A stretch of 30,313 nucleotides of DNA from Macrostomum lignano (Eukaryota): contig NIVC01004953.1 in the NCBI GenBank assembly GCA_002269645.1, forward strand, positions 1 to 30,313, written 5' to 3'. A program made the translations under genes and the position numbers. The first letter of the stretch is position 1, and each line of letters opens with the position of its first letter. Shown piece after piece: positions 3,151 through 27,945 of the stretch. The notes below the pieces were generated by a model. The model was given only the letters and a program-made list of their open reading frames with translations, searched no databases and was not told the DNA's origin.

Positions 3151-3289
3151 TTTAAAATGTAGACGAGTGGAACTCCTCCTCTGGAGAAGAAAGGGGAAGA
3201 ACTCCCATCACCGGAATTCTGAAGGGGAAGAACTCCTATCAGCTGAAATTCCATGAATTGAATCCCATCTTCCAAATCCTCTACAATCT

Positions 3290-4355: not shown

Positions 4356-4379
4356 TGACTGATTGAAGATGCCAAATCC

Positions 4380-4860
4380 ATCAAGATCCTCTCCGCGAAG
4401 CAGAAATCCTCTCCGTGAAACTGGACTCCTTCGAAATCCTCTCCGTGAAACTTAAATTCATCAAAATCGTCTCCATAAAGCAGAAATCAATCATAAATTA
4501 TCTCCGCGAAACAGAAATCCTCTCCGTGAAGCTGAACATCATCGAAATCCTCTCCGTGAAACTGAACATCATCGAAATCCTTTCCACGAAACTGAACACC
4601 ATCGAAATCCTCTCCACGAAACAGAAATCCTCTCCGTGAAGCTGAACATCATCGAAATCCTCTCCGTGAAACTGAACATCATCGAAATCCTTTCCACGAA
4701 ACTGAACACCATCGAAATCCTCTCCACGAAACAGAAATCCTCTCCGTGAAGCTGAACATCATCGAAATCCTCTCCGTGAAGCTGAACATCATCGAAATCC
4801 TCTCCGTGAAACTGAACACCATCGAAATCCTCTCCACGAAACAGAAATCCTCTTCGTCAA
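4380..4860. repeat. 30/20-bp minisatellite with 110-bp higher-order repeat
   Basis: Core atcgaaatcctctccgtgaaactgaacatc. Blocks 4511-4620 and 4621-4730 are identical 110-mers, and 4731-4840 is a near-identical third. Confidence 0.9.
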
Positions 4861-4942
4861 ATTTTAAACATTGAAATCGTCTCCGCTAAACTGGACTCAA
4901 TCGAATTTTTTCCGTCAAACAACTCAACTCTCCGGATTCATT

Positions 4943-6722: not shown

Positions 6723-8012
6723 TTAGGTGTACGGTTGGATGACGAAAACTCCAATAAGAGCTGCAGTGGCGGCCACTCCCATAGCAACCATGAGTCGTTC
6801 GACAGCGTGCGTAGCAACCACCCAATCGGATCGAACAACTGGAGTGTCCTCTTCATCAGTACTGTTCTTTTTTTCGATGCTAGTCCCATTCTTGATCTCG
6901 ACCTTGTTGATTTTGGCAGCACCGCCAACGCAGAACACTCGAGCCAAGAAGCCAATCAAAACGGCACGCATGCAGGCCGACATCCGATTGCCCTCCGGAG
7001 CGAAGTGCAGACGCATAATTAGCGACGTTAGTAGCAGAGATATCGTCGACAAGGTCATAGCGGCCGTGATGAACGAAGCGATCGCTGGTGTTGTCTGCGA
7101 CTTGGGCACGATGCTGTCCAGCAGAAGAAGGAACACAGTGTAGCTGAGCATGATTGTGATGCCGAATCCTAGCTTCTCGCCAGACTCCAGGGGCACAAAG
7201 TATACCAGCACTTGTAGCAAAGTCAGCAGTAGCAGTGGTGTGATGATGTTCATAAAGTAGTAGGCGGAGACTCTCTCGATCTCCAGACGGATCACATAAG
7301 TTGGTAGAAGCACATCCGGTGCACCTTGAACGAGTTTGTACGGCTTCCGTTCGGACGACGTCGACGCATTCACCAACTTCCATTCGCTGTTCATCCGATA
7401 AAGTCCGTCTATTTGGAATGGCGTCAAATTGTTCTTGACAGGAATCAGCATTTGGTTGTCATGGCCCTGGTCGTTGAAGAAGAACTCGAGCTCGCAGACG
7501 TGCTTGTCTATGGGGAATTTGCTCACGTCGAACTCACACGAGAATTCGAACTCTCGACGCCATCCCGCGATGACTCTGGTAAGGTTGGACTGGATCGACC
7601 TTAGATACACTGGCATCTGCGGAGTGAGCATCTGGTTGTCTCCGATGCCATTATAGATGAGGATGACAGGAAACCAGACATTCGAATTGTCCCAGTTAAT
7701 CACGGTTAGGTTCCCAAACTTGGCCGGATCCCAGACCAGACGCTCCTCGGTCCAGCCGGCCATTACGAAAGCCCCAATCTTGACGCTTTGCTTGGCACTG
7801 TCTACTGATACCAGCTGGGTCAATGATGTGTCCATAGTGATGTAAGTAGGCTTGTAGGCGTTAATTGTGGGTCGCAGCAGCGGACTATAGTTGGTGATAT
7901 TGTTCTTCAAGTACTGCAGCAGCTCGTGTTGCAGATCTCTATCTTGAGCTGAGCCGCCACAAGTGGCAGCTAAAATCGCTGTGGCGACTAGTAGAATTTC
8001 GCGTACGGACAT
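6723..8012 (-). CDS. Cys-loop ligand-gated ion channel subunit, nAChR-like non-alpha (array copy 1, intact, 429 aa)
   Basis: Uninterrupted ORF with ATG at 8012 (MSVREILLVATAILAATCGG signal peptide). Cys-loop CEFDVSKFPIDKHVC (C-x13-C), four hydrophobic helices, M2 GEKLGFGITIMLSYTVFLLLL, no vicinal CC. Confidence 0.93.
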   Translation of the reverse strand: MSVREILLVATAILAATCGGSAQDRDLQHELLQYLKNNITNYSPLLRPTINAYKPTYITMDTSLTQLVSVDSAKQSVKIGAFVMAGWTEERLVWDPAKFGNLTVINWDNSNVWFPVILIYNGIGDNQMLTPQMPVYLRSIQSNLTRVIAGWRREFEFSCEFDVSKFPIDKHVCELEFFFNDQGHDNQMLIPVKNNLTPFQIDGLYRMNSEWKLVNASTSSERKPYKLVQGAPDVLLPTYVIRLEIERVSAYYFMNIITPLLLLTLLQVLVYFVPLESGEKLGFGITIMLSYTVFLLLLDSIVPKSQTTPAIASFITAAMTLSTISLLLTSLIMRLHFAPEGNRMSACMRAVLIGFLARVFCVGGAAKINKVEIKNGTSIEKKNSTDEEDTPVVRSDWVVATHAVERLMVAMGVAATAALIGVFVIQPYT

Positions 8013-8157
8013 TGTGTCGATGTGTCGATACGGTGTAAGAGGCAAATGTTGGTTACTGCTTTCTACTCTATATCATCATAGAAAGCAGAGTTGAAGAAAA
8101 GATCCTATAGGATAGCTGTTTAGTCAATAACGCGTCTGGTCTACCAGTGCTGAATCA

Positions 8158-8171
8158 ATCGCCATGGCAAC
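8158..8171. promoter_or_regulatory. X-box (RFX)-like motif about 150 bp upstream of copy 1 ATG
   Basis: ATCGCCATGGCAAC versus consensus GTHNYYATRRNAAC: one mismatch, perfect 3' half. Confidence 0.3.
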
Positions 8172-9147
8172 GAGTGGAACTGCTGTAATTGAATTAATTT
8201 CATTTGTGGAGGTACTCTTGTGTGCAATATAACTGGTGACGTTGCTTCCGTGTTTGACTAAATATCCCTTACCCCCTGAGCGCACGAATCCTCCGTGTGT
8301 TAGTAAACGAGAAAGCTGGTAAAATATACATTATCAACTACTGCATGGTAGTAGTAAAGAGAAACTCTTCAAAATGTTTGAAAGGGGCTGTCAACTTAAG
8401 CACTGTAAGTATATAGAAGTAAGTAAGCTCGAATTAGATTTCTAAAAAAACTGACAAACCGACTGGCTGAAATAAATAACGAAAAATCCTATCAATGCAA
8501 GTTCGTTTCTGGAACTCTCTTAGAGAATATCTCCGACTTGTCCGTCTATGTATATATTTTATCCGGAGCCTCACTTCGGCCTCCATTCCAGAGCGTTTAG
8601 TTGGTATCCCTTTTATTAGAATATTTCGCTTTACAATGCAGATGCGAAATCGAAAATATACTCTCAACCTTTTAACGGGAATTCCAACGGGTATGTAAAA
8701 AGACCAACATCTTCCAACATTTTCCAACATCAAAATGTACAAAAAATAGATAAACTACTACTTCATATTAGTGGCGTAGATAATATATTGAGTATATTAT
8801 ACGTAAGCAGATAGCAGCGTGTGTGTATTCCGTCCTATAATAAGCATAAAGGACGCCATAAATAAATAATTATTTTAGTTGACAGCGCCCAAGCCGGAAA
8901 AATTATTTCTTTTTAGTAGCGGTTCCTGCAGCCAGCAACGCATCTGAGTCTTGTCCTGAGTCCCGGGTTCGATTCCGTGCGGGTAAGTACCGTTAATAAA
9001 ATCAACATTAATAATTTATGTATGTCATGACAATTTTAAAGCAAGAATATCAAGATGAGTTGCAAAACCAGTTAATAATTTTGCAACACTAATAAAAACA
9101 ACCATAAAATTAGTTCTCACAGTTGTTAACAGCATTGTGTTGTTTAG

Positions 9148-10428
9148 TTAGTTAATTAACAGTGGCCTCAGCAGGAATGCCCCAATAATAGCGGCGGTAG
9201 CAACAACGCCCATTAGCGACATGAGCCTCTCGATTGCTCGACCTGCTACTTCCCAGTCCGATTCTGACGCTTCTTTTTCACTTGGCCTCCGGGCATTTTC
9301 GTTCTCTGTATAGCCTTCGACAGCAATTTGATTGGTCTTCTGTGATGCCCTAGTGGCGCCGCTGACGCAGAGCAGGCGGCCCAGGTATCGAACAAAGACC
9401 GTCCGAGCGCATTCCGGCATGCGGCTGCCCTCCGGCCTGAAGTGGAACAGCATGGTCAGCGAGGTCAGCAGCAGCGACACGGTAGACAGCACCATGGCGG
9501 CCGTGATGAACAGGGCGATGGCGGGCATCTTGTGCGACTTCGGCAGGATTCCGTCCAGAAGCAGCAAGAACACAGTGTAGCTGAGCATGATTGTGATGCC
9601 GAATCCCAGCTTCTCACCGGACTCCAGGGGCACAAAGTACACCAGCACTTGGAGCAGGGCGAGCAGCAACAGAGGAATTATAATGTTAATTACATAATAG
9701 GTTGATATCCTTTTAATTTTTAATACGACTCTGTAAATGGGTAGTTTAAGAGTGGATTCCATTTCTTCATAAATGTCATATGTTTGGGTCAATATGCTGA
9801 CTGTAGCAGTTTCGAGATTCCATTCTTTACTATGCTGGTAAATGCCTAGAAGCTTGTACTTGATACGCGGAACCGCTGGATGCGTCAAGTTTTGATAGTA
9901 TGCGTCAGTGGCGAATAATTTTATTTCGCAAGTGTGTCGATCAAATGGAAACTCGGCCATGTTGTACGCGCAAAAAAAATCGAACTCACGTCGCCAAGTG
10001 GCTATCACCTCAGACAAATTGGGAGTTTTCGACTTTAATCCAACAAACACCTTCGGCACCAATGTCTGATCATTGCCGTTGCCATTGTAGACTATGATGA
10101 TCGGGTGCCAAATCTGTTCAGCTTCCCATCGGGTGTACACGGTATTGCCGAAGTCTTCTGGGTTCCACACGAGTCGCTCTTCCTCCCAACTGGCTTCAAC
10201 GTATGCTGACACCTTCATGCTTTGCTTAGCTGTGTCCACGGAGACAATGTGGCTCAGCAAGAAGTTCAGCGATATGTTCAACATCTTGGTTTTGTCGATT
10301 CGTGGAAAATGCAACGGATTGTGATCGGTATTGTTTTTTAGATATTTTAGCAGCTTGGCGTCAAAGTCGACAGTCGTTGGCGTAACAGCTATTAGAAGAC
10401 ATAAAAGGATCGCTGTTCTAGCGAGCAT
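9148..10428 (-). CDS. Cys-loop ligand-gated ion channel subunit, nAChR-like non-alpha (array copy 2, intact, 426 aa)
   Basis: Uninterrupted ORF with likely ATG at 10428 (MLARTAILLCLLIAVTP signal peptide). Cys-loop CAYNMAEFPFDRHTC, same M2, four TM helices. Confidence 0.93.
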   Translation of the reverse strand: MLARTAILLCLLIAVTPTTVDFDAKLLKYLKNNTDHNPLHFPRIDKTKMLNISLNFLLSHIVSVDTAKQSMKVSAYVEASWEEERLVWNPEDFGNTVYTRWEAEQIWHPIIIVYNGNGNDQTLVPKVFVGLKSKTPNLSEVIATWRREFDFFCAYNMAEFPFDRHTCEIKLFATDAYYQNLTHPAVPRIKYKLLGIYQHSKEWNLETATVSILTQTYDIYEEMESTLKLPIYRVVLKIKRISTYYVINIIIPLLLLALLQVLVYFVPLESGEKLGFGITIMLSYTVFLLLLDGILPKSHKMPAIALFITAAMVLSTVSLLLTSLTMLFHFRPEGSRMPECARTVFVRYLGRLLCVSGATRASQKTNQIAVEGYTENENARRPSEKEASESDWEVAGRAIERLMSLMGVVATAAIIGAFLLRPLLIN

Positions 10429-11199
10429 TTTGCCACGAGACAGGGCTTTGCTTTGAATTGATCGGTTAATTGTAAGTTGCTCGGTTTTCCACTGCAGCCA
10501 TATATATACAGCACCAGAGATCTCGCAACTCATCACCCTGGCGTGCTAGTGTAAATTCTAGATTGATTCTTATTTGAATTTCATTTAGGTAATTCAATAG
10601 ATCAAATATCGTAAAGTTAGCTGCTTATATTGGTCTGATATTCCAATTAGCAGATCCCTGACCTCGTTTGACGTCGTTATTTGCATAGAAACTTTTCATC
10701 GCTGCATTTTCTGGTCTGGGTGCGGTCTGCAGTAGCGAACTATCTTTAGCACGGATACGCGCGGCGCACCTTTATATAGCATTCTCGGATATGTATTCCA
10801 TGTATGCTAGCATGTTGCAAAAGGATGCTAATGAAATTTACGTGAATATTATGTGTATAGCTACTATCTGTTTAATTAATAAATTGGATAAATCCTACAA
10901 GCATTCTTCGCTCCCTTTCAAAGCCATGTCGTTTTGAAGTTGAATTTTAGTCTATACAGCAGGTGACAAAATCAAACTAACCTGTCCGTTGGGTCTTATA
11001 AATCAAGAGCAGCCCGGCACGCAGGCCGTGCCTCAAAGCTAAATCTGCGGCGCGGGTGTCGGCCAGCAGGCAGTCTACAGAGCGCCGAGTTCGCGTCTGT
11101 CCTCGCCCGAGTAACAGTCCAATTTGGCAACAGACCATCTCGGCGACAACCATTTCGACGAAATTAACAAGAAGTTCAATTTTAAACGAATCGTAATGA

Positions 11200-11334
11200 T
11201 CTCTGTCTCTCTCTCTCTCTCTGTGTATTCTTTGCGAGTATAAAATTATGTGATAAACAAATTCCGACTACCTTAATCGAATAAGCTAGTTGGCGAGAAT
11301 TTTCATTTTAAACAAATCGCAATGATCTCTCTCT

Positions 11335-11366
<32 letters not shown>
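11200..11366. repeat. Two (CT)n microsatellites, each preceded by a similar 24-bp motif
   Basis: ttttaaacgaatcgtaatgatctc (about 11180) and ttttaaacaaatcgcaatgatctc (about 11306), each running into (CT)n. Confidence 0.75.
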
Positions 11367-11368
<2 letters not shown>

Positions 11369-13305
11369 CTCTCTGGGTCTGCTTCCCAAAGGGTTCCATC
11401 CCTGTGGGTCATCCCGCTGCAAATGCTGCACCCACTCACCGCATGTTCTCTCCAACTACTCCAAGCTACACAACTCGGGGAGTGTGAATTTGCCTGCCAG
11501 CTGCAGTTGCAACAGACGCAACAAGTCGCTTTGAAGAACCAGGCCGGAGCTGCAATAGAAGGCCGCGTTGATAACTCGCATATCGCAGATCCTTAAGGCT
11601 GCGTGCAGCAGGTCCTATAGTGTTTTAGCATAGTTTTTATGTTGCCTACTGATCTCTCAAAGACACAGACAACGCAAGATGTACAGCATTCCATACACTG
11701 ACTCCATTGAAACATCCGACGTCACAGACCATATGCTTTGCTCTACTTCTCGCAGACAATTAGGGGTGTGTCCAAAATCGAGTTCCGTTGTGACAGCGAT
11801 GCTGATCCATCTTATCCGTAGATTGTGAATAACGTGCAAGACGCGTTTGGCGCAAGGAATGACCAACTTCCTTTGAATATTTTGGCCCAGCCTTTCATTC
11901 ATAAAATCCACCGTTAAATTTACGAACCGACCACTCTGAAAGTTCTACCAAAATTAACTTTGCCAACCTTGTGACTTACTAAATAGAAATAACGATAGGA
12001 AACTTCATTTAAAATAATTATAGCAAGTAAAAAATTCTGCGGTTTATACTTTTTTAAATTAATACATAACTTGAAATATTTAGGACTATATCTGTATGCG
12101 AATATGAGAGCTAGTGCAGAGTTTTCACAAGAGTACAGAAATGCTTTGCTGTCTCAAGGGATTTGTAAGCACCTCACTGAAAAGTCCTACACAGTCTACA
12201 TAGTTTAAGCTCTTACGGCTGTAGTGGACTTCTTTCTTCTGTAACGAGTGCAGCTGCCTTTGTCAACTGAGGGTTTGTAATACCGTCCATAAATTCCAGA
12301 TATCGACTCTGTTGAGCTAGCTAATTGCCTACCGAGCTGGAGAGTCCAGAAGCGAGAGCACTTCAACCGCTACGCAACTGAGCTTTAACAAACAAATCGA
12401 TTGCAGCCGGAGCCATTGAATCGATTATAGGGATCCAACACTCTATCGAAAGCAGTCTCCATTGTTTGTCTAAAGCATATTTACCTGCCAATATGCAAAT
12501 CGATATATACAGCATTTATAACCTAGAGGATGCTGCCACTGTGTAGATAGGCTCAATGCTATATTTGCAATGAAAACTTGAATTGTGAAAAGAATTAATC
12601 GCTTCAAATATATCGTAAATCTTTTCAGCACTTTTTAGATAGACGGTATGTAAATACCGACTGGTCCCAATACATGTGCAGGGCCAAAAGAATATCATGA
12701 TTGAGGGGAACCTTTAATTCAATAGAAATATTTTCTACTGGTCTGGGCGTATCTTATACGCTTCAATCAGCTGAGTATTAAATTTTTTATTCAGGACAAG
12801 AACAACTATATTTTAGTGCATTTAAATAATAGATTATAGAAAGGACAGTGCTCAACTAGTCTTTAAGACGTTTTATAGTTGTCCCAAACTATAAACTATA
12901 AAATAACATTTCTATTTTACGAGACTTTTTACTCAAAGTACATGAGGGCACAGAGTGTGTAATCGAAGTGTGCTTCAGCGAGTGTGTCTCACGGTGACAA
13001 AGCCAGAGGCCATTTTACACAATGTGCGAGAGTGTGCCTGCGTACGTTTTCATTAGTGTCAGTGCAGATGGGTCAGTGGAATAGGCATATGACTGCTTTG
13101 CCTCCTCGATCGCTGGCTGCCTAATTTGCGGCACTTTCCAGTCTAATCCCTTCAAACTTTGACTTAATAAGGAAGAGCTTTTAAAGCTCGTTCGCGATAC
13201 CACGAAAGGAGACGAAATTGCGATAGCACGAATTGTGAAAAGATTTTGTACCTTTTTACCGTACGGCAGTTCCTTGATCTAATGCTTTATTTTATGTCCA
13301 TTATT

Positions 13306-14557
13306 CTATAGTAAAAACAAGCCGATGATGGCAGCAGTAGCAACCACTCCGAACAGCAAGATGAGCCTTTCGATTGCGCGTGCCGCTACCACCCAGTCTG
13401 AATCGAATTCCCTGGCTTCTCCGGCAACCTCCAAGGCACTTCTATCGGCTATGCCGAAACCCTCCAACGGTTTCTGGCCGACCCGTGGTGACGTTGCAGT
13501 ACTGACGCGGAGCAGTCGGCCCAGGCATCGAACAAAGACCGCCCGAGCGCATTCTGGCATGCGGCTGCCCTCCGGCCTGTAGTGGAACAGCATGACCAGC
13601 GATGTCAGCAGCAGCGACACGGTGGACAGCACCATGGCGGCCGTGATGAACAGGGCAATGGCGGGCAGCTTTTGCGACTTCGGCAGGATTCCGTCCAGAA
13701 GCAGCAAGAACACAGTGTAGCTGAGCATGATTGTGATGCCGAATCCCAGCTTCTCACCGGACTCCAGGGGTACAAAGTACACCAACACCTGGAGCAAAGT
13801 CAACAGCAGCAAAGGCGTGATGATGTTGATGAAATAGTACGTTGACACTCGCTTTAATTGCAATCTCAGTATGAACGCTGGGAATGCAGTCTCATGTGCA
13901 TCCAATACGTGGTAAAGTTTCTTTTCAAAGTGTGTGGTGGCATTGGTCAGAATCCATTCGTTGCTCGGATTGTAGATTCCCTGCACACGTAGAGGGGCCG
14001 TGCTCGGAACAGGAATGATTGAATCGAGATAGCCTTGATTATGGTAAATAAATAACAGCTCGCAAACATGCTGATCGTATGGAAAGTCAACCATGCTAAA
14101 CTCGCAATAAAACTCGAACTCCCGGCGCCAGTATGCTGTGACTATGGTCAGCGTTGGCCTTAACGATAACAATGCAACAGGGATCTGAGGCACGAGAACT
14201 TGGTCCTCGCCGTTGCCATTGTATATCATGATTGTCGGATACCAGATATGCGCTGGGTCCCAGCGAGTGAGCTGGGTGCACCAAAGTCGGCAGGATTCCA
14301 CACGAGTCGCTCCTCCTCCCAGCTGGCTTGAAAGTAGGCAGATATCCTCAAGTTTGCTTGGCGGTGTCCACTGAGACCAGATGGCTGACCATGATGTCCG
14401 TAGCTACTTTAATAGTTTTGGTCTTATTAATTCGCGGCAGTATGAAAGGACTGTAGTTTTTTATGGTTTGCTTAAGATGTTGCATCAGCAGGACATCGAA
14501 ATCGGTTGCTGCTGAATATCTGAAGAGAGAAGCGATTAGGATTACTTGAAAAAACAT
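13306..14557 (-). pseudogene. Cys-loop receptor array copy 3, two 1-bp frameshifts (pseudogene or sequencing error)
   Basis: ORFs 14348-14557 (signal peptide, ...VSVDTAKQT) and 13306-14301 join into a full subunit if one base is restored at about 14351 (ACT[T]TG) and one at about 14279 (GGTG[G]C). Cys-loop CEFSMVDFPYDQHVC. The C-terminus ends slightly early (GLFLL*). Confidence 0.85.
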
Positions 14558-17394
14558 CCTTGTTGCAGTCCTAGAAAGTGTTTTGACTGAGGTCTATTGG
14601 TTAAACGAGAATCTTTCCTATCAATGTATCAACGAAAAAGTATTTCTGTGCTTGCTTTGCTTAGGTATACTCACCAAGGTTGGTTCAAATATTTTATAGT
14701 CAAGATCCAATCGATACGATGACGAATAATTTTGAGTACCAAAAACACGCTGTACTGATAGTAGTATGTTCCGCAGCTGCGTGGCATGGCATAGCATAGC
14801 GCAAACATTGTTATTGCATTTGACTGGAGGCAGACCTAATGTTCATCTTCAGGGACTTCTTAAACTAGTTTAAGTAGTCCCTGGTTCATCTTTTGATATT
14901 TTGCCTTTCGTATACATGTTACAAGATCCTAATATGCTTAGAAAATTAGGATTCTACATGTATGTTAAATTGATGTTCTTAGTACATTTCCTGTGCCCTA
15001 AGAGTTATAAAAATGGCCTAGCTCGACTTATTAGTTTTATGAATATCTTTTTTACCATTCTCAGCTTCTGACTATGTAACAAAAATTTTAACAGGATGAG
15101 TTGAGCGGTGCTATTTTTATAATTTTTCGGAATGGAACATGTCAGTAGGATATGTAATTAACATTTATCCTAAATTCTCAGTTCACAGCCTCAAATCTTA
15201 GGTTTTAGACGAAATTTCCAGGATATCGTCATATCTACAGTACAAATATGTGGCTATTAGCTACATCAATTCTGTTCAGTCTTGTATTATCTTTCAGGGG
15301 TATCTGATGTTAAGTCTGTCTGGCTCCATCTGTATTTTTTAGTTTATATTTTAAAACCATATTCCACTTCATGTAATTCAACTGACAGACACATAGAAAG
15401 TAATCAAACGTTTGCTCTTAATTACCCGTAAGCGTGCCCCTTTAGGGGGTGACGTTTACGGTGGTCAATAGCTGGTCGGGCACCGGTCTCTCCCTTGCTC
15501 TGAACACTTTTTGCGTCATGTATTCTTTATTTCCGTCGCCCCGCTCCCTCTTCGTCCCTCTGCCATGCGCGCACCCACCTCCCCCGATATGGTTTTAAGG
15601 TCTTCTAGCGTTGTGTCGGCTCGTCTTGTCTGTTTGCGCAGAGTCAAGTTTTATCCTCTGTGGTGTCTTTTATCCTTATTCATAATGGCGATCGCTTTTT
15701 CCTTAATCGTTGCTGATAGCTTATTTTACTCTTTTCGTCGAAATATTATGTCCCAAGTCTATAGGGTTTTATGGGGCTTGCGTGCCTCGCTCCCCCACGT
15801 TGGTGTTTGCGTCAGGCTGCTTTCGTGCTCCGAACGTGGAATTAACATCGGCGATAAGGAAACGTCAGTGTTGATGAGGTGGTAAGACTGCATGTACGAG
15901 CACAAGAACTGCCACCGATTCTTAGAAAAGAGGCTATAGGGGACATAGCGACATGGTATACACATGTATTGATGACTGACCGATGTAACTGTACCCCTAC
16001 GTTAGAGTACATAGAAATGAAGACCTCTCATACCAGAAAAGCATGAGTTTAATATGTGGTTACTACCGGAAATTTTTATTGGGTGAATCCCTAGCTCTTT
16101 AGTAAGACTCTCTAGGACTCAATGCGATTCAGACAAAATCTGCCACGGAGCTAAATGCACTGCTGCAAAATCACATGGACCCAAGCCTACCTACCTGCAT
16201 TCAAACTTCGCAACTTGTAGCTCGATTTGTATTTTTTCGATTTTTTGTACCTATTCATGTTTGATCAGGAAAAATTTGATGTAATTATAACTCCCTGTCT
16301 AATATTTACATGTTACATATGTAATTTGCATCTGTAATTCCTGCCTCTCTGCCTCAAAAAAGCTTTTTAAGGGATAATTTTTAACAGTACGTGTTTAAAT
16401 GGAAGCTTGAATTCTGATTTGATTTTGAATTGTGGCCGATTTCTGTTGCCAAGTTCGGAAGTTCTGAGGACTTCGGTATTCGATGTAGGCAGAGCCGTCT
16501 GACTCGCCCCGCGACCCCCGGGATCGGTTCAGTACGCGGCCACATGCATATCGGGCCTGTGCACGAAAGTTGGCCCAGGGGGTTGTCCTGCGATTCTCGC
16601 CCACATGCGGGCCAAACCCCAAGGCGCAGAGGGTGTACATCCCCTGACGATTAGAAAGTCAAAAAGGCCCTGTGTGAGCGTGTGCACGAATGCGTGCCTG
16701 CTTACAGTATTAGCGCGCTTGTGTGTGCTCAGGACTCGGCGGAATGGCCAGAATTGCCTCAGAATTGCAGAAGAGCAGTATAGTGGATGAAGCCACAACC
16801 CTTTGTAATTATTATTAATAATAATCTTGTTATAGGGAGAGCACTTAATCTTTCCTCTCCTAGCTACCATCAATTAACTAGCTAGGAAGAACTTAATTAA
16901 TTATACACGGTTTCTGCTCTCGCTGAAATACAGACTGTTTACTCTGCAACTGAAGCAGATTTAGCGCCCAGCATGGCAACTGGACGAACGGGCCGCATTG
17001 CTCGCTATTCAAATATTTGCCCAAACGTTAATTGCATTAGCAAAACGCCTAGCCTATTTCCATTGCCTGCATTTCGCGCTTGACTAGTGCGTATCCAATG
17101 GCAACGGTGACTAGTTACTTTCGTTTATTCAAGCCCTTCCGCGATTGGCATTAGCCTATGCATGAAAAAATTGATCACGCATGTTTCACTACAGATCTAT
17201 CTAGTCACTGCCCAAGAAGGCCCGGGGATCAATGCCTGTTTCCTAAATTCAGAGCTAAAAAATTCCGAAAATTCAATTCAGAAGATTATTCAGAAAATAA
17301 AACAAAACCATTGCAAAGAGTATCAATGAATATGGTAGTCAATAGAATGCCAATGCCTTTCATAAGCATTCAAATCTCAGTTATTCAAGTTTCA

Positions 17395-18714
17395 TTAAGA
17401 GAACTGAAGATACGGCCCCATCAGAAAGACTACAATTATGATGGCGGTAGCAACCACTCCTAACAGCGACAAGAATCTCTCGATAGCGCGGGTGGCCACC
17501 ACCCAGTCTGAATCGACCGATTTCTCTTCCGCCGTAGGCGGTTTCCGCACGCAGTTGCCATCGCCCTCAGCTTCAGCCGGACTCTGCTGGCCCACCTGTG
17601 GCGCCGCTGACGCAGAGCAGGCGGCCCAGGCATCGAACAAAGGCCGCCCGAGCGCATTCCGGCATGCGGCTGCCCTCCGGCCTGTAGTGGAACAGCATGG
17701 TCAGCGATGTCAGCAGCAGCGACACGGTGGACAGCACCATGGCGGCCGTGATGAACAGGGCAATGGCGGGCATCTTCTGCGACTTCGGCAGATTCCGTCC
17801 AGAGCAGCAAGAACACAGTGTAGCTGAGCATGATTGTGATGCCGAATCCCAGCTTCTCACCGGACTCCAGGGGTACAAAGTACACCAACACCTGGAGCAA
17901 AGTCAACAGCAGCAAAGGCGTGATGATGTTGATGAAATAGTACGTTGACACTCGCTACAAGTGCAATCGCAGAACAAAGTTCGAAGTTCGGTCTCGTTAT
18001 GTCCTTCGATTATAAAATATTTTTTGGTTTCCAAATCTGCTGTTGCAATTTTCAATATCCACTCGTTGCTAGGCTTGTAAATTCCTGTCACCCGCATGGG
18101 CATTGCGCTGCGAACAGGCCGCATTGCATCAGGATTGGCCTGAGTTGCAAGGAAGAACAGCAGCTCGCAAGTGTGCTGGTCGTACGGAAAGTCGGACATG
18201 TTGAATTGGCAAAAAAATTCGAACTCCCGGCGCCAGGATGAAGCAACCGTCGTCACGCTTGAATTTTTAGAAGCAGTGTAAGTAGGAATCCGAGGAATCA
18301 GAATCTGTTCATCGCCGTTGTTGTATGTCATGATGATTTAGGTGTACCAGGAATTCTGTTCATCGCCGTTACCGTTGTATGTCATGATGATTGGGTACCA
18401 AATTTTCGCTGGGTCCCAGCTAGTAGAACTGACGCCACCAAAGTCGGCAGGATTCCACACGAGTCGCTCCTCCTCCCAGCTGGCTTAAACGTAGGCAGCG
18501 ATTTTGATGTTCTGCTTGGCAGTGTCCACTGAGACAAATGGGCTGACCATGATGTGAAACGACACGTTGACTTTCTTTGTCTTGTTTAATATTGGCAGAA
18601 TCATTGGCTGTAGTTTGCAATTTTGTTGTTTAGGTGCTGCATTAGCAGGACATCGAAATCAGTAGCTAGTGTCGAGGCTAAAAGCGAAACCAGCAGTATG
18701 AATGAGAATAGCAT
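17395..18714 (-). pseudogene. Cys-loop receptor array copy 4, multiply disrupted
   Basis: Start MLFSFILLVSLLASTLATDFDVLL at 18714. Lesions: 1-bp losses at about 18606, 17983, 17803 and 17791; in-frame stops at 18485-18487 (TAA) and 17955-17957 (TAG); an imperfect duplication of about 51 bp at 18304-18392 carrying a TAA. Cys-loop CQFNMSDFPYDQHTC. Confidence 0.88.
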
Positions 18715-18968
18715 TTTATGTCTCATTTTCCAGTGCATTGCTGATCGCATTGACAACTGGTACGTCTGATAAAATAGTTTTAATGCCGTTTCACCCCGAC
18801 CAACTACAGGTTGGGCTCAAAGATCGCCTGAAAATCCGTTTGCTACTGAAATTCGATTGGACAGATAGCTTTCATCAATATGAAAGCATAAAGCAGCGCC
18901 AGTGTTATCACATTTCTAGCGAGATATTTGATAAATATTGGCTTGAAAAAAATAGACTTGCTTTTTTT

Positions 18969-20884
18969 CAAGCCAATTGAGCTAGGAGCAAGAAATTTAA
19001 TCCTTAGTGGGAAGATCAAGCTATTGAAGACAATTGCTTTTCATTGTCTAGCAATTTGACGATCATTATTCACATTTTTAATGCAGAACAATCCATTACT
19101 ACAAGCAATGCATTTTCTTTAGGATCGTCAAATAGAAAAACAATGCAAAGAATCAGCGGTCGCAGCACGTGGCAACGATTTGTCTATGGCTCGCGCCTAC
19201 CGGCGCTCGCCAGACAATCGTTGTCACGCACTGGGACCGCTGATTATTTATCCATTGTCTATGGCCCGAAAGGGGGTCCATGGAACAACCAATTTGAGAA
19301 TTTGGGCGCGCTATTAATCCTTTCCACAGTTGCGCAAGCCTTAGACCATAGAAAATAACAGATTTCATTAGACAAACATAGACATGGCAGACGAAGAATT
19401 TAGCGAGCAGAGCAGTGACGAAAGTTTTGCTACAGCCCAAGATGGAGTAGATGAGCAGAATCCTGCAGGGCGAGAACCCTATCGCAAGATAAGCAACGAA
19501 AAGTACGACCTGATTATCGCTGCCATCGATAGAGGTGATAGTGCTGAGCACATTTCGCGATAGCTGGACGTAAAGAGAAAAACAGTTTATTCTATCAGGC
19601 GTCGCTATGAAACCACGGGACGCCGGGACCGCACACGACGGGGTGGAGATCGAGCATCGAAACTGGAAGAGAAACACATCCAACTACTTCTTTCATCACT
19701 GGATATCATCCTCTAATGACGTTGAAAGAGTTGCGACGCAAGTTGACTGACACCTATCCAGGCCGAAGTGAGTACTACAGCTGTAAGCCAGACCTTGGAC
19801 AAACAGCTGATTACATTGAAGTGCCTTGGTCGAGACGCCGATGTGCCAGTGGTCAGGAATAGTCCTGAATATCGGGCACGCCGACGAGAATTTTCTCACT
19901 GGTTCACTGGTGTTCCACTTGAACATCACCTCATCTATGTTGATGAGACCGGTTTCAACATTTGAACTCGCCGGTCCCAAGGACGCAGCAGACGTGGCCA
20001 GCGAGTCCGACGTGTTTTGCACACGCAACGTGGGGTTCAGGTCAATTTCCTGCAGGCAGTGGCACCAAATTTCGGCTTGGTACACCACAAGATTGTCGGT
20101 CACACACTGACTTCAAACGTGTTTCAAGCATTTGTCGAAAGAGCTGCTCCATGCTGTCAACAATCGAGATGATGTAGACAATGCCGAGAACTTCTTAGTA
20201 ACCATTGATGGCGCTCGCTTCCATAGCGGCTGAGGATCCCCAGCAGTTTGAGCTGAACTGGCAGGTTGTAGTACTGCCTCCATATTCTCCATTCTGAACC
20301 CGACCGAGTGTGCGCATTCCTGTTTGAAGGCGGCCATCAAGCGGCAGCTTGCACAGCCACAGGTGCAAATCGAATTGGACAATCCACCGCCAGAGACAAC
20401 ACTGCTCGAGTGGTGCGTACTCGTTCTTCATCGGATTGCGGAGGAGACAACGGCTGAGATCACAGAGGCCAAATGCGGTGGCTGGTTTCGGCAGATGCTT
20501 CGCTTCATCCCGCACTGCTTAAACGAGGAAGAAATTCTCTGAACATTGATCGGGTTTGGTTTCAATCTGTCCAACACTGTTTTGAGAGACACGATTGTTC
20601 TCGGCTTATACTGTATGCCATGGTTTTTCCTTTGCCTGTTTGATTGGTTTCTCTGAAATCAAAGTGTTAATGTCAATCGTTTCTTGATATGCCATCTATT
20701 TGCAGACGTTATTTCAGTAAAGTTATTCGTGAAGGATATACGAGCACTGTGAAAAGGATTAATTCTCAAATTGGTTGCTCCATAGTCCCCATTTTTTGGG
20801 CCATAGACAATGAAAAGCAAGTGTTCAATAGCTTGATTCTCCCAATAAGGATTAAACTGCTTGCTCCTAGGCTCAATTGGCTTG
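18969..20884 (+). mobile_element. Decayed IS630/Tc1/mariner DNA transposon with imperfect inverted repeats
   Basis: Inverted repeats: 18969-19050 plus 19253-19328 match the reverse complement of about 20750-20884 (caagccaattgagc..., cattgtctatggccc..., caaccaatttgagaat). A transposase remnant lies inside. Outer ends may extend a few tens of bp further. Confidence 0.85.
19384..20542 (+). pseudogene. DDE (IS630/Tc1-like) transposase pseudogene
   Basis: ATG at 19384. HTH-like segment (AEHISR*LDVKRKTVYSIRRRY...RGG), IYVDETGFNI (first D), IDGARFH (second D), LPPYSP-LNPTE (E). Several stops and frameshifts. Confidence 0.88.
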
Positions 20885-21900
20885 GAAACTTCTATACTAA
20901 ATTTGATTTATCATTTGGCCGTCAGGCTTTTTACAATATTGCAGCTCCCCTCAAAATGCATGTTTAATCCTCTAAAGAGAGCATAGACATAACGATTTTC
21001 CAGGATAATACGAGCGTATTGAATCCCGGAAATCCCGGAATGGAAGTAATGTAAATCGTTATATCTATGTTTTATATGGAGCTTTAGTTCTATGTCTATA
21101 GTTATAAGCTTGTAATTGGACTGAAGTGGTGCTGTTCCCCAGGGTTTTTTGGTTCTGTAGGGTAAAATACAGACTCAGTTTTTTTTTCTTCATCTAAATT
21201 AGATATTTCTTCAAGATTTAACACACATTAACACAACACACACCATTACCCTCGTATATCCTTTACATAAAGCAATAGGAGTGGAGCTAGTATAATACTT
21301 CCCATTTACAATATTTTGTAATCTAGCGAGCAAGGACTCGAATGTCTTTGTCCCTGGACAACTAAGGTAAAATAATTGACGAATTATGTGTACCCCACTG
21401 TCCCCCTAAGAAGTTAAAACAAAAACAAAATGCGCTGTCAGAGTTCTTAGATGGCAGCGTCACAAGGTCACAATTAGAAGCGTCACATAAATCTGATATA
21501 TTCGTAAAATATCGAATGTATTATTTCAAAGATTTAGCTAGGACAGAAAATTTTATGAAGATAGCGTTGAGAAAAAATTTATATTTAAGCGAAAGGATAA
21601 TGTCCAATAGAGTTTATTTAGATAGAGCATAATTGTGTGCAGCTGAGATTATAAACATTTCTTGGGCGTGAATACGAACAAAGATCACAGCGAGGGTACA
21701 AGTTGAAGACCAGTAAACTCCAATTATCGACTGATTTTCACCTCCTCAAATGTGTGAAAAAATTAAAACAATAATTTTCAAAAATAAGGCTCACTCTGAG
21801 TTATCAGTGGGTTAAATTTCGAGCAAGATTATTTAAACAAACAGTCTTAAATTCACTGCGCGTTGATAGCTCGTAGATTCCTCTTACGCTCGTAAACAGC

Positions 21901-23205
21901 TTAGTCTTGATTTTGAATCATGGGTTTCAAAACAAACACTCCGATGATTGCAGCTGTGGCGAAAACTCCCAGAGCCACCATCAGCCTCTCAATCGCGTAG
22001 GAAGCCACAATCCATTCCGACTTCGCCACGGGAGCTGAGTCGGCCATCTTGCGCACACTGGACTCACTTGCCGTTGCGTAAGCAGTCGGAGTCTCACTGT
22101 CCTGCGCACTGGACGAGCCGTTCACGCAGAACACGCGTCCAAGGAATCGGACAAAGAAGCCTCGGGCACATGCGGGCATCTTGGTGCCCTCCGGAGCGTA
22201 GTGAAATCGCATGATTAGCGAAGTTAACAGCAGTGACACCGTTGACAGGATCATGGCAGACGTGATGAACGATGCAATAGCTGGTGTTGACTGCGACTTC
22301 GGCAGGATGCCGTCCAGAAGCAGCAGAAACACGGTATAACTGAGCATGATTGTGATGCCGAATCCCAGTTTCTCGCCGGATTCGAGTGGTACAAAGTACA
22401 CCAGCACTTGAAGCAGAGTCAACAGCAACAGCGGAGTGATTACGCTTATCAAATAGTACGTTGAAACTCTTTTAAACTGCACCCTGATGATATAAGATGG
22501 GAGAATTTGCTTCGCAGCTACTCCGCGAATCAAATTGTAAGCCCTATATTCAGCTTTTGAGGATGCATTCACCAATGTCCACTCGCTGCTCTCTGTGTAT
22601 AGCGCCTTTATATCGAATGGGTGATTGGTCTTCGCTATTGGAATTACCATCGAATTTCCGTGCCCCTGGTCGCTGAAGAAGAACTCCAACTCGCAGTCGT
22701 GCTGATCCCAAGGGAATTTTGACACGTCAAATTGGCAGGCGAATTCGAACTCGCGACGCCACATTGCAGTAACTTGCGTACTGTTCACTGTTGTCGACAA
22801 AAGATCTACCGGCATCTGCGGCGCGAGAACCTGTCCGTCTCCAATGCCATTATACACCATGATAACAGGAAACCAGACCTCTGACGCGTCCCGGTTAATC
22901 ACTTTCACGCCGCCAAACTTTTTCGGATCCCAAACCAGTCGCTCCTCCTCCCACACAGCCTGAATGAATGCTGATATTTTTATGCTCTGCTTTGCCGTGT
23001 CTACAGACACAATCTGAGACAGAAGCGAGTCCATCACGATTTGGATCACCTTGTCCTGGTTAATTCTTGGTAACAGATTCGGGCTGAAATAGCTGATGTT
23101 GTTCTTTAAATACGTGTCAAGTTCACCCTCGAAGTCCTGCTGTCCCTGGACACCAGCCGCTGTCAGCAATAGTGTGATGACAGTCACAAATAGAGCCGGC
23201 GTCAT
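21901..23205 (-). CDS. Cys-loop ligand-gated ion channel subunit, nAChR-like non-alpha (array copy 5, intact, 434 aa)
   Basis: Uninterrupted ORF with signal peptide MTPALFVTVITLLLTAAGVQG, Cys-loop CQFDVSKFPWDQHDC, same M2, four TM helices. Confidence 0.94.
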   Translation of the reverse strand: MTPALFVTVITLLLTAAGVQGQQDFEGELDTYLKNNISYFSPNLLPRINQDKVIQIVMDSLLSQIVSVDTAKQSIKISAFIQAVWEEERLVWDPKKFGGVKVINRDASEVWFPVIMVYNGIGDGQVLAPQMPVDLLSTTVNSTQVTAMWRREFEFACQFDVSKFPWDQHDCELEFFFSDQGHGNSMVIPIAKTNHPFDIKALYTESSEWTLVNASSKAEYRAYNLIRGVAAKQILPSYIIRVQFKRVSTYYLISVITPLLLLTLLQVLVYFVPLESGEKLGFGITIMLSYTVFLLLLDGILPKSQSTPAIASFITSAMILSTVSLLLTSLIMRFHYAPEGTKMPACARGFFVRFLGRVFCVNGSSSAQDSETPTAYATASESSVRKMADSAPVAKSEWIVASYAIERLMVALGVFATAAIIGVFVLKPMIQNQD

Positions 23206-23838
23206 GTTTATCAGCTAGCTATGCTTTGGTATGCCTCGGTTCTCAAGAGAAATTCAATCAAACTTTGGTTATAAATATGGAGTTTGTCCAAACAATGGAT
23301 TTGTTTCATGATTGGCTTGCTGTGTGGCTTCTGACGCGAGCCACACGCATACAGTATGCATATTTGAGTGGTGCTCCTAACACAACGCTTACCTGAGTGG
23401 TGAAAACTGTGCAAGTTGATTGATTGATCAGATTAGGAGAAGCAAGCAAACGGGCGCACGCAGTATATAGTAGAGCTGCTTTAATTATTAATTCTGCTAA
23501 AAATAAAATGAAAGTCATGATTGAAAGCTTTCCATATAACGTCCAAACCAATTTTAGTGGCACTTTTACTCGTAGTGCCTTTAATTTCTATTGTTAATTG
23601 CTTTGCTATCGCAACAATGAGTGGGTACGAATGAAAGTTGGACGGACGAGCCAAGCCAAATAAGCGCATATTAACAACGAATACCGGATATTCGGTGCCT
23701 GGTTTTACTGTGTACTGGAGTGTTAGTGCCTGCGGTTAAATTTACTCATTGAATTTACTGATGCTATTTGTTTGATGAGTGGAATTAATGTGGATTGTGA
23801 AATGCTTGGGGTTTTTCGGGGTGGCCTGGAAGGTCTTT

Positions 23839-23858
23839 GAATCCCACCGCTGCCACCA
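23839..23858 (-). other. Primer-binding site complementary to the tRNA-Leu 3' end
   Basis: The + strand GAATCCCACCGCTGCCACCA equals, as I recall it, the 3' end of metazoan tRNA-Leu(AAG/TAG) including CCA. On the - strand, TGGTGGCAGCGGTGGGATTC begins 1 nt after the LTR-terminal CA. Confidence 0.8.
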
Positions 23859-23859
23859 G

Positions 23860-24830
23860 TGAAATAGATTGGGGTTTCTTCCCGATTTAGGCGCTTAAGA
23901 TTACCTTAAGACTCGAGCCTCTTCAGTGGGAAGTTCTCTCAACTCTCAGTAGCGTAGGTAGTGCTGCCACCAGTTCCTTCAGGTCTCGGCCTTCGATGAG
24001 GTGAGCTTCCCGTCGGAACGAAATAAACAAGTCAACGAACTCAGCACAGCGTGCAGATTTGCAGATTAATGAACAAGGCGTCCTGATCAGCAGATCCCCG
24101 CCGGGCTCAGGGGTGGCTGGAAGGCAGTGTTAGCCTCCCTTAGGCTTGGGCTTTAGTGGGGTCTCAGTCAGACCAGTACAAACGGATTCAGTACGCAAAG
24201 GGCACTTAGTTAGACACTGACGCACACGGGATCTTAGTGAATTCTCCGCAGATAAGAAGCCAAATCCTTGACGGAAACAAGGGGAGAGGGGTCCTATTTA
24301 TAGCCGGGAAACACCCACGCACAAGACCTCGTGACTTGTTCTATTTTTAGAACTGACGTCACTTGAGATCTCGAGGCAGGGTCTCAGTGCGCGCAAGACC
24401 TCGTGACTCGTTCTATTTTAGAACTGACGTCACTTGAGGTCTCCGGCCAGAGTACACGCGGCTGTGACTCAGTTGCTATTTTTAGCAACATGAGTCACTC
24501 CTCTCCTTAGAGAAGGGAGGGGTCCGAAAGCACGTGATTCTCCCGGTAAACAGGGCCAACGAGTGCAGTAAACATGTTTACTGCACTTTAGGACTCGAAG
24601 AACGCAGAGTCTGTCATGTGACTTGCTCACATGACAGAGGAAAACGGGACGGGAACGAAACAGAGACAGCCCACAGCAGAGAAGCTGAGGGCTGAGAACA
24701 GAGACGCAGAAGGGCAGAACAGGCCAAGGGCAGCAACAGACGGGCCAAGGGGGGTGGGAAGCTGACCAGCGGCAGACAGCAACCCAGGGCGAGGGCGAGG
24801 GAGACTGCTGACAAAGTGGGACGCCTAACA
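23860..24830 (-). mobile_element. 5' LTR (about 970 bp) of a truncated LTR retrotransposon
   Basis: The - strand begins TGTTAGG at 24830 and ends ...ATTTCA at 23860, directly before the PBS. TATA box CTATAAATAG at 24303-24294, motif-rich U3, and an abrupt switch to AT-rich host DNA after 24830. No gag/pol is seen downstream. Confidence 0.75.
24294..24540 (-). promoter_or_regulatory. LTR promoter/enhancer: TATA box, two CRE sites, two AP-1 sites, E-box
   Basis: TGACGTCA at 24354-24361 and 24425-24432, TGACTCA 24465-24471, TGAGTCA 24491-24497, CACGTG 24531-24536, TATA on the - strand at about 24302-24296. Confidence 0.55.
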
Positions 24831-25505
24831 TCAACTAGCGGATCACTACAATTAGCAATTATACAATAACTGCATAATAAATTAAATAGTTTGCAATTTT
24901 TTGTAATACTGCTTTTAATATTTTGTCGAAGTTTCTACAAAACAAGTTTCTATGAATCTTCACTCGCTCCCACTTCTAGTTTGAAAAGTAGACTTTTACG
25001 AGTGGTTCTGAAATAATAATAAACCTTCGCTCCATCAAAAATATATTTAACTAAATAAACTAATTATATTAATTATACATATATAATTAATAATAATACA
25101 CTTCTCTGAAACTCTCCTTTCTCACTTGCTCTGGCACCGAAATGTCTGGCAACGAAGTTTCTGGCTACATAACAACCAAACTTTTCTTAGTTCACTCACT
25201 AAAGTTTCTCGTTTCATAAAAGTTCGAAACTACTCTAAGTAGCTAAAAACGGATGGAAAAGTTTTGCTAACGACGCATTTTTTGGTGAAGTTATTGTTAA
25301 ATTTAAGATTATCCAGCGACAAGAAGTACATGTGGACAGAAAATGTATAGCTGGTAGTAGTAGTGTTTGATTAGACGAAAATATTTATTTATTTAAACAT
25401 TTAAAATATTGATGCGTGATGCGCATTTTCTCGCGCTTATTCCTCCAAAAATAAAGGAAGATGTTAGCCTCAGTGAAACTGTTAGCTGCCAATTGTGAAG
25501 CCAAG

Positions 25506-26809
25506 TCAGCATTTGTACGGCGAATCCCAGTAGGGCCTGATGATGAGGCCGCCCAGGAGGGCGGCTGTGGCTGCAACACCCAGCGCTACCATCAGCCACT
25601 CGACAGACTTTGTTGCCACCGTCAAATCCGATTGAATCCGGCCGGCGTTTCCATCCACTTTTCTAACGTTGGTCCGGCTATTGTCGCTATTTTCCGTCCA
25701 AACCGTCGCGTCGCTACCTTTCACGCACAGCAGACGGCCTAGAAATGGACGAGAACGACTTTAAGGCAGGTTGGCATTCCATCATCTCCAGGCGTGAAGT
25801 GAAGTCGCATGGTCAAAGAAGTCAGTAGGAGAGATCCTGTGGACAGAATCATCGCAGACGTGATGAAATATGCAACAAATGGCAGCTTTTGTGACCGATA
25901 GAATGCCGTCCAGGAGCAGTAGGAACACAGTGTAGCTGAGCATGATTGTGATGCCGAATCCCAGCTTCTCACCGGACTCCAGTGGCACAAAGTACACCAG
26001 CACTTGAAGAACAGACAACAGAATGAGCGGTGCAATGATGTTAACGAAGTAATAATTTGATACTCGACAGATCTGAAGCCTTAATTCGTACGTTGGAAGC
26101 AGCGCCTTTCTCGAACCTCGAATCAGTGCGTACTCCTTGAACTCTGCAGACGTGGAGAAGTTCAGAAGTGTCCATTCGCTGCTATTTTGGTATAGAACTA
26201 GCGGGTTATACGGAACCAGCTTGTTGACCTCAGGTTCTACCCCAGAATTGTGCCGTTCAGGATCGATGAAGCAGAATGATATAGAGCAGTCGTGCATGTC
26301 CACGGGAAACTGGCTTAGCTTACGTCAAACTTGCAAGTGAATTCGAACACGCGACGCCATGGAGCCGTGACTTGGGTTAAGTTGGGTGATTGCGACGTTA
26401 GGAAAACTGGCGTTTTTGATTGCGGCACCTGATCCTGTCCTACACCGTACATCAAAATCAAAGGGCTCCAGATTTCATCAACTTTCCAATTAATAACGGT
26501 AACATCACCGAATTTGCTCGAATTCCAAACCAGCCGCTCCTCTTCCCATTTTGCCTGAAGCAATGCGCTCACTCGTATCGTCTGCTTCACCGTGTCAACC
26601 GCAGTTATGTGGGTCAGCAGAGGGTCCATCCTGACAGCAATTTTAGCATTCGGCTCTATCCTGGGCGGGAGCAGGGGACTGTAGTTGGTTATGTTGTTCT
26701 TCAAGTACTGTATCACGTTAGCCTGGTGGTCCGCCCAGACAAAGCTGTTGCAGAAGAAACAGACAGCAAGAACAGTGAGAACAGCTGACAAATTTCGTAG
26801 TGGAGCCAT
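25506..26809 (-). pseudogene. Cys-loop receptor array copy 6, frameshifted
   Basis: ATG at 26809 (MAPLRNLSAVLTVLAVCFFC). A 5-bp tandem duplication TAAGC at 26313-26322 breaks the Cys-loop (CKFDVS[*]QFPVDMHDC). Further lesions are a 2-bp loss at about 25895 and a 1-bp loss at about 25742. Natural stop at 25506. Confidence 0.88.
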
Positions 26810-27312: not shown

Positions 27313-27945
27313 CTGGCGCCCCTGGTTCTGGCGCCCCTGGTGCTGGCGCCCTGGTGCTGGCGCCCCTGGTGCTGGCGCCCCTGGTGCTGGCGCCCCTGGT
27401 GCTGGCGCCCTGGTGCTGGCGCCCCTGGTGCTGGCGCCCCTGGTGCTGGCGCCCCTGGTGCTGGCGCCCCTGGTGCTGGCGCCCCTGGTGCTGGCGCCCC
27501 TGGTGCTGGCGCCCCTGGTGCTGGCGCCCCTGGTGCTGGCGCCCCTGGTGCTGGCGCCCCTGGTGCTGGCGCCCCTGGTGCTGGCGCCCCTGGTGCTGGC
27601 GCCCCTGGTGCTGGCGCCCCTGGTGCTGGCGCCCCTGGTGCTGGCGCCCCTGGTGCTGGCGCCCCTAGTGCTAAAGCCCCTGGTGCTAAAGCCCCTGGTG
27701 CTAAAGCCCTGTTGCTAAAGCCCCTGGTGCTAAAGCCCCTGGTGCTAAAGCCCCTGGTGCTAAAGCCCCTGGTGCTAAAGCCCCTGGTGCTGGCGCCCCT
27801 GGTGCTAAAGCCCCTGGTGCTAAAGCCCCTGGTGCTGGCGCCCGTGTGCTAAAGCCCCTGGTGCTAAAGCCCCTGGTGCTAAAGCCCCTGGTGCTAAAGC
27901 CCGTGGTGCTAAAGCCGCTGGTGCTAAAGCCCTGGGGCTGGCGCA
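27313..27945. repeat. 15-bp GC-rich minisatellite (GGCGCCCCTGGTGCT / AAAGCCCCTGGTGCT)n
   Basis: About 42 tandem units with occasional 14-bp units. The GGC variant dominates the left part and the AAA variant the right part. Confidence 0.95.

Follow-up and report, generated by a model that had tools for sequence, protein, structure and literature searches.

Interlocus gene conversion is known from tandem paralogs such as the globins, the opsins, the major histocompatibility complex (MHC), CYP21 and tandem gene families of C. elegans, and its described forms include microconversion tracts and GC-biased conversion. The nearest precedent found among ion channels is that of the newt voltage-gated sodium channels, where non-allelic conversion carried adaptive substitutions for toxin resistance from one paralog or duplicated exon to another (Gendreau et al. 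2021, PMC8476164). In a literature search, conversion at the pore helix (M2) of Cys-loop receptors was not found to have been reported. The present analysis concerns a stretch of 30,313 nt from the flatworm Macrostomum lignano (GenBank assembly GCA_002269645.1, contig NIVC01004953.1, positions 1 to 30,313 of the forward strand; hereafter the window), which carries six homologous intronless gene copies, c1 to c6, arranged head-to-tail on the minus strand with a spacing of 2.4-4.5 kb. Judging from their sequence, these genes belong to the Cys-loop family of pentameric ligand-gated channels and are similar to the alpha7 subunit of the nicotinic acetylcholine receptor (nAChR).

The six copies have widely diverged, with the exception of a short segment around M2 that is shared, down to silent sites, by five of them. 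The best explanation is recurrent non-reciprocal interlocus (ectopic) gene conversion between divergent tandem paralogs, to which a probability of roughly 0.82 is given. The conversion looks like a by-product of local DNA similarity that is kept by constraint at the protein level.

Silent-site identity and tracts around M2

In 15 of 15 pairs of copies the longest identical run falls in M2. The exact matches given in the preliminary description, 39 nt in c1, c2, c3, c4 and c6 (codons 283-295; zero expected by chance) and 60 nt in c2, c3, c4 and c6, were both found; furthermore, 26 nt are identical across all six copies, and the exact shared runs reach 98 nt between c2 and c3 and 153 nt between c3 and c4. 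The extracellular domains are far apart, as had also been claimed, with proportions of nonsynonymous differences (pN) of 0.22-0.43, nucleotide p-distances of 0.30-0.52 and saturated synonymous sites. The claim that the M2 peptide is identical in six proteins is correct in part: the peptide is kept in c5, but only c1, c2 and c5 are intact, with open reading frames (ORFs) of 426-434 codons, and in c4 a 1-nt deletion in the last M2 codons makes the in-frame peptide read ...FLLLWTES, unlike the other copies.

The proportion of synonymous differences (pS) was calculated by the Nei-Gojobori method (NG86) on a codon alignment built on the intact c1, c2 and c5, to which c3, c4 and c6 were then added. 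It is saturated (0.7-0.9) in the extracellular domain, M1, the intracellular loop and M4 of almost all pairs, compared with 0.00-0.35 among c1, c2, c3, c4 and c6 at codons 271-300 and 0.03-0.08 among c2, c3 and c4 at codons 301-345. In a sliding window of 20 codons the synonymous divergence (dS) falls locally to 0-0.3 at M2, and the dip continues through M3 for c2, c3 and c4, so that low dS is confined to this region on a saturated background, as the preliminary description had anticipated for conversion. It should be noted that c1 and c5, which are sisters in the extracellular domain, have no dS dip at M2, and that c5 has 10-15 synonymous differences from the other copies within the 30-codon block. 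Silent sites at M2 are thus not under a general constraint.

Codons that encode the same amino acid in two copies are identical in 32-55% of cases outside the block for most pairs (67% for c3-c4) and in 72-100% of cases inside it for pairs without c5. Codon usage is weakly biased, and the core holds the non-preferred codons TCC, GGT, ACA, CTC and ACT; its two glycines use different codons, as do its two threonines. The significance of the shared runs was assessed by a GENECONV-type test on the longest run of identical silent codons, in which the codon order was permuted to correct for scanning. This gave p=0.002-0.01 for c1 against c2, c3, c4 and c6, p<=1e-4 for c6 against c2, c3 and c4, and p<=5e-5 within c2, c3 and c4, whereas c5 was not significant with any copy (p=0.14-0.75). 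The joint run tests gave p=2e-5 for c1, c2 and c6 and p=9e-4 for all six copies. The silent-site identity therefore exceeds chance and codon bias, in line with the earlier proposal that purifying selection on the protein would not produce it.

The tracts were mapped by a two-breakpoint likelihood scan (Table 1). They are nested, with 5' ends that are specific to the pair, and all of them overlap the M1-M2 loop and M2. The tracts of c6 with c2, c3 and c4 are ~100 nt long, and those of c1 ~40-86 nt. A homogenisation of M2, as originally described, is thus found in every tract, but the description is too narrow for c2, c3 and c4, where the tracts run from the M1-M2 loop to codon ~365 and for c3-c4 also include M1. 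The copy c5, which encodes the same peptide, gave no significant signal with any other copy and serves as an essentially unconverted control. The c2-c3 tract is also seen as a repeat match of 93% between 9362-9661 in c2 and 13502-13801 in c3. Scattered copy-specific differences lie inside the tracts, with 8 in c3-c4 and 9-16 in c2-c3 and c2-c4. The pairs that include c5 have just a broad divergence of 18-23%, as expected for a constrained membrane domain. An origin by unequal crossing-over or as chimeric genes was considered and rejected, since all tracts are flanked by diverged sequence on both sides; unequal crossing-over would leave a single junction.

Low synonymous divergence was also observed elsewhere in the genes. 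In the extracellular domain c3 and c4 have a second patch of low dS (14270-14354 in c3 and 18436-18511 in c4; codons ~75-104; pS 0.17-0.18), with 89% identity over 76 nt, which is possibly another, older conversion tract. A similar dip is present between c1 and c5 at codons 95-124 (pS 0.36).

The base composition of the tract is altered in the three copies that share most of it. In the c2/c3/c4 tract the GC content of third codon positions (GC3) reaches 0.81-0.86, as opposed to 0.52-0.60 over the remainder of those genes (p=4e-10 to 3e-5); in c2 it is 0.86 in the tract and 0.52 elsewhere, with values of 0.30-0.37 just upstream of the tract. The shift spans ~95 codons, and GC3 is not shifted at the matching codons of c1, c5 and c6. 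Where c2 and the other copy differ between G/C and A/T at third positions of the tract, c2 holds the G or C 25-34 times and the A or T 5-8 times. This excess fits repeated GC-biased gene conversion (gBGC) among c2, c3 and c4. Local dS dips, permutation significance, double breakpoints and the GC3 excess all support the gene conversion between divergent paralogs that had been proposed.

The pseudogene c6 adds information on the timing. At alignment columns that are uniform in the other five copies, c6 differs at 77 of 393 (19.6%) outside the M2 block and at 0 of 72 inside it (p=6e-7). It is thus decayed elsewhere and pristine at M2, and M2 must have been refreshed in this copy once decay was under way.

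These observations are best explained as follows. Purifying selection on the M1-M2-M3 membrane core holds the DNA of the copies ~77-86% identical, versus 50-70% in the extracellular domain, and the remaining similarity would let homologous repair take a neighbouring copy as template. Repeated conversion would yield short tracts (~40-350 nt) that differ from pair to pair and in every case overlap the most conserved segment, the M1-M2 loop and M2. Every conversion would restore perfect identity and ease the next one, and such a self-reinforcing process would keep the core identical at silent sites in five copies. The core of c5 has drifted at silent sites, which would have put it out of reach, so that c5 dropped out of the exchange, and repeated exchange among c2, c3 and c4 would have raised the GC3 of their tract. 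The tracts with their significance and double breakpoints, the GC3 shift and the participation of pseudogenes are shown by the data, whereas we infer the repair mechanism, the self-reinforcing dependence on homology and the direction of transfer.

Alternatives to gene conversion

It is hardly credible that amino-acid constraint, codon preference and chance would suffice, with no special process, and for c2, c3, c4 and c6 this is effectively refuted. The M2 peptide is indeed invariant, unconverted pairs retain 77-82% DNA identity in their transmembrane (TM) regions, and the runs of c5 are within chance. However, the fraction of identical codons rises steeply in the block, non-preferred codons are shared, permutation p-values are as low as 2e-5, and other invariant motifs (WRREFEF, EEERLVW) are free at silent sites. 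Selection could also act on the nucleotide sequence itself, for instance to preserve an mRNA structure, the target of a small RNA, or a signal for translation pausing or membrane insertion, in which case the copies would not have exchanged sequence at all. The 26-nt core in all six copies, with its significant joint run test, would agree with this, as would a mild excess of identical codons between c5 and c2, c3 and c4 in the block (0.62-0.66 versus 0.37-0.44). Nevertheless, such selection is quite improbable: the intact c5 differs at many silent sites in the block and the dS of c1-c5 is not reduced, the cleanest copies sit in c4 and c6, which as pseudogenes are free of it, the tract ends vary by pair and reach 350 nt, and the GC3 shift is specific to c2, c3 and c4. 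In addition, a test for structure in the sense RNA was negative (z=+0.47), and Rfam gave no match.

Repeats abound in flatworm genomes of this type, which were assembled from noisy long reads, and false identity could arise if the reads of one paralog "correct" the others during polishing or if repeats partially collapse; the single-base indels of c3 could be errors of this kind. Such an artefact is nevertheless highly unlikely to have produced the tracts, which at 39-352 nt are shorter than reads and have copy-specific flanks of 30-50% divergence, so that reads would be placed uniquely. Moreover, the copy-specific differences persist inside the tracts, and a GC3 shift over ~95 codons is unlike a product of polishing. 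An adaptive version of the conversion hypothesis was put forward in the preliminary description, with a constant pore and a variable sensor: conversion would be favoured because it keeps the pore helices of co-assembling subunits identical while the ligand-binding domains diversify. The coincidence of the conversion core with the pore helix and the pN of the extracellular domains would suit this idea, but it was not supported and is regarded as very improbable. The M2 peptide is held without conversion by c5, and nearly so by the related protein P0002; pseudogenes, which cannot assemble, make up three of the five converted copies; and the tracts follow homology from M1 to M3 and vary by pair rather than tracking the pore helix. 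Saturation of dS precludes any evidence for positive selection in the extracellular domain, and co-assembly of the subunits is itself only supposed. Likewise, it would be quite surprising if selection maintained a shared pore module, with pseudogenes as sequence reservoirs and an interchangeable M1-M3 core that lets new ligand-binding domains join existing heteropentamers; if true, this would be a strategy of modular evolution not described for Cys-loop receptors.

Gene conversion as a by-product of homology is thus preferred, and several points weigh against it. The evidence for c1 consists of a tract of 39-41 nt, and its pairwise p-values of 0.002-0.01 would weaken if corrected for 15 pairs. 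In triplet tests of the 3SEQ type on all sites, in which saturated flanks make the informative sites noisy, c1 was not significant (p=0.23) and c6 was marginal (p=0.04). The comparison of separate trees, which had been suggested as a check, gave a divided result. The distances are discordant: c1 is nearest to c5 in the extracellular domain (0.36), whereas in the core c1-c2 is 0.09 versus 0.16 for c1-c5, and c6-c2 is 0.04 versus 0.09 for c6-c1. However, the neighbour-joining (NJ) topology of the 100-nt core, which is short and poorly resolved, is weakly informative, and its bootstrap revealed no robust conflict with the extracellular-domain tree. The case is built on the paralogs of one array in one assembly, and a polishing artefact is a formal, albeit unlikely, possibility.

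Layout of the array and of the window

The repeat units resemble one another in the gene bodies only. The DNA between the genes is unalignable and not part of the repeats; together with the saturated synonymous sites, this indicates that the duplications are ancient. The features of the array are listed in Table 1.

Table 1. Gene copies, shared runs and conversion tracts (window positions unless alignment columns are stated; percentages are divergence)
Feature	Position	Strand	Description
c1	6723-8012	-	Intact intronless Cys-loop receptor gene, 429 amino acids from ATG; ORF and Pfam Neur_chan_LBD, Neur_chan_memb
c1 M2 peptide	7116-7181	-	
c1 copy of best c1-c6 low-divergence tract	7129-7214	-	86 nt, 5 differences
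c2	9148-10428	-	Intact paralog, 426 amino acids from ATG
c2 M2 peptide	9553-9618	-	
c2 copy of c2/c3/c4 tract	9360-9644	-	M1-M2 loop, M2, M3 and start of intracellular loop; codons ~270-365
c3	13306-14557	-	Paralog; two 1-nt deletions, after 14353 and after 14271, both in the extracellular domain; tblastn frame changes
c3 copy of c3-c4 tract	13500-13853	-	M1 to M3, codons 247-365; 8 substitutions versus c4
c4	17395-18714	-	Pseudogene; in-frame TAA (codon 84) and TAG (codon 247), at least two in-frame stops
c4 copy of c3-c4 and c2-c4 tracts	17605-17956	-	
c5	21901-23205	-	Intact paralog, 434 amino acids; M2 peptide at 22312-22377 same as others, synonymous codons differ
c6	~25530-26809	-	Pseudogene; 5-nt insertion with TAA at 26318-26322, 2-nt deletion after 25896, 1-nt deletion after 25747
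c6 tract	25906-26006	-	~101 nt, 4 differences from c2; includes the exact 60-mer
39-nt core	7131-7169 (c1), 9568-9606 (c2), 13708-13746 (c3), 17811-17849 (c4), 25923-25961 (c6)	-	
Exact 60-mer	9568-9627 (c2), 13708-13767 (c3), 17811-17870 (c4), 25923-25982 (c6)	-	
c3-c4 tract	alignment columns 740-1093		352 nt, 2.3% inside versus 33% outside
c2-c4 tract	alignment columns 809-1100		290 nt, 3.1% inside versus 41% outside
c2-c3 tract	alignment columns 797-1093		297 nt, 5.4% inside versus 43% outside
c2-c6 tract	alignment columns 802-902		101 nt, 4% inside versus 49% outside
c1-c6 tract	alignment columns 802-887		86 nt, 5.8% inside versus 42% outside

Two of the copies, c4 and c6, are clearly pseudogenes. 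In c4, 1-nt deletions follow positions 18608 and 17979 and, at the end of M2, positions 17804 and 17792, and a 51-nt in-frame internal duplication (18321-18371) repeats the ...YNGNGDEQ... part of the extracellular domain. In c6, many positions that are invariant in the other copies are altered. The two deletions of c3 split the signal peptide from a C-terminal ORF of 331 codons, and c3 is probably a pseudogene as well, unless they are assembly errors. Introns were rejected as a source of the frame changes, since the alignment of the copies has no inserted sequence there. The deletions at 17792-17804 in c4, at the 3' end of M2, lie within the tract that c4 has in common with c3 and with the intact c2. 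Conversion from c4 could in principle pass a frameshift to a live gene, and the pseudogenes of the array may thus transmit lesions.

The other ORFs of the window have no Pfam match. Several kb of CT-rich low-complexity or microsatellite DNA with periods of 7, 9 and 23 are present at 269-4228, with an extreme strand asymmetry (GC skew of -0.6 to -0.76); the long ORFs rich in Leu and Ser to which this DNA gives rise on the plus strand are spurious. A tandem repeat with a 110-nt period made from ~30-nt subunits (4.4 copies, 90% matches) follows at 4378-4891, and a 15-nt tandem repeat (CTGGCGCCCCTGGTG; ~42 copies, 93% matches) is located at 27313-27944, where the local kb is GC-rich (0.585). Between c5 and c6, upstream of c5 and ~1.1 kb from its start codon, two adjoining units of ~72 nt lie at 24318-24453, each of which holds the palindrome TGACGTCA.

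Comparison with known receptors and conversion systems

The assignment to the receptor family is based on several features. The intact copies c1, c2 and c5 score 90.7-96.9 bits on the ligand-binding domain (LBD; PF02931) and 72.2-81.6 bits on the TM domain (PF02932), both above the Pfam gathering score, and have four hydrophobic segments. A Cys-x13-Cys disulfide loop with an FPxD core, read from the translations, is kept in all six copies (C-EFDVSKFPIDKHV-C in c1). Among solved structures, nAChR subunits fill the top 50+ hits in the Protein Data Bank (PDB), with E=1e-40 for alpha7, and the M2 peptide SGEKLGFGITIMLSYTVFLLLLD can be aligned with the M2 helix of alpha7. As in the cationic alpha7 nAChR and serotonin (5-HT3A) receptors, M2 has a -1' Glu in the GEK ring and a 9' Leu, and an outer acidic ring is also present, which places the genes in the cation-selective nAChR/5-HT3 branch. 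The array genes differ from these receptors in that they are ~25% identical to any named animal receptor, intronless, organised in a lineage-specific array, and have a short M3-M4 loop. In a HMMER alignment of c5 with alpha7, the loop-B Trp of the acetylcholine agonist site (GSWSYGG) aligns to Ser and the vicinal Cys pair of loop C is absent; for lack of these conserved residues, a ligand cannot be assigned.

Close relatives are rare, and the family is nearly missing from public protein databases, in which four close proteins were found. Among 5.8 billion clustered proteins a handful of close relatives was present, three of them in word-index searches, followed by animal nAChR/5-HT3 proteins of ~25% identity. 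A full HMMER scan of representatives revealed a fragment from Macrostomum lignano (UniRef A0A1I8GG98) that is 98% identical to c5, in agreement with the origin of the window, and added beyond it only distant animal nAChR-like proteins. The other relatives are P0001, with 94% identity to c5, P0003, with 83% identity to c4, and P0002, a paralog with 55% identity to c2 that keeps the M2 peptide but for one I-to-V change. A metagenome scan with the alignment as query found no relative, and exact-protein look-ups for c1, c5, P0001, P0002 and P0003 found nothing on record. The array thus looks, by these comparisons, like a lineage-specific orphan branch of the cationic Cys-loop receptors. For annotation and phylogenetics it is of importance that the TM region of these receptor genes has a different history from the extracellular domain.

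The newt sodium channels (PMC8476164) resemble the array in that short conversion tracts between ion-channel paralogs affect the sequence of the pore region. However, they belong to another channel superfamily, and only synonymous variants are moved in the array, where the peptide is already invariant and no adaptive change is visible. The array is a case of ordinary ectopic gene conversion, a known process in a new gene family, with no new mechanism and no bearing on channel function. Its likeness to described interlocus conversion is extensive: same-orientation paralogs lie a few kb apart, silent sites are homogenised against diverged surroundings in short two-breakpoint tracts, the tract with the most exchange is enriched in GC3, pseudogenes participate, and only the most conserved segment takes part in the exchange. 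What sets the array apart are its unusually divergent flanks, which are saturated and differ at 30-50% of nucleotides, so that conversion survives on an island of ~100-350 nt. It is therefore a clean and quantifiable case, in which conversion persists on a homology island of 40-350 nt between otherwise saturated paralogs and dead copies keep participating in the exchange.

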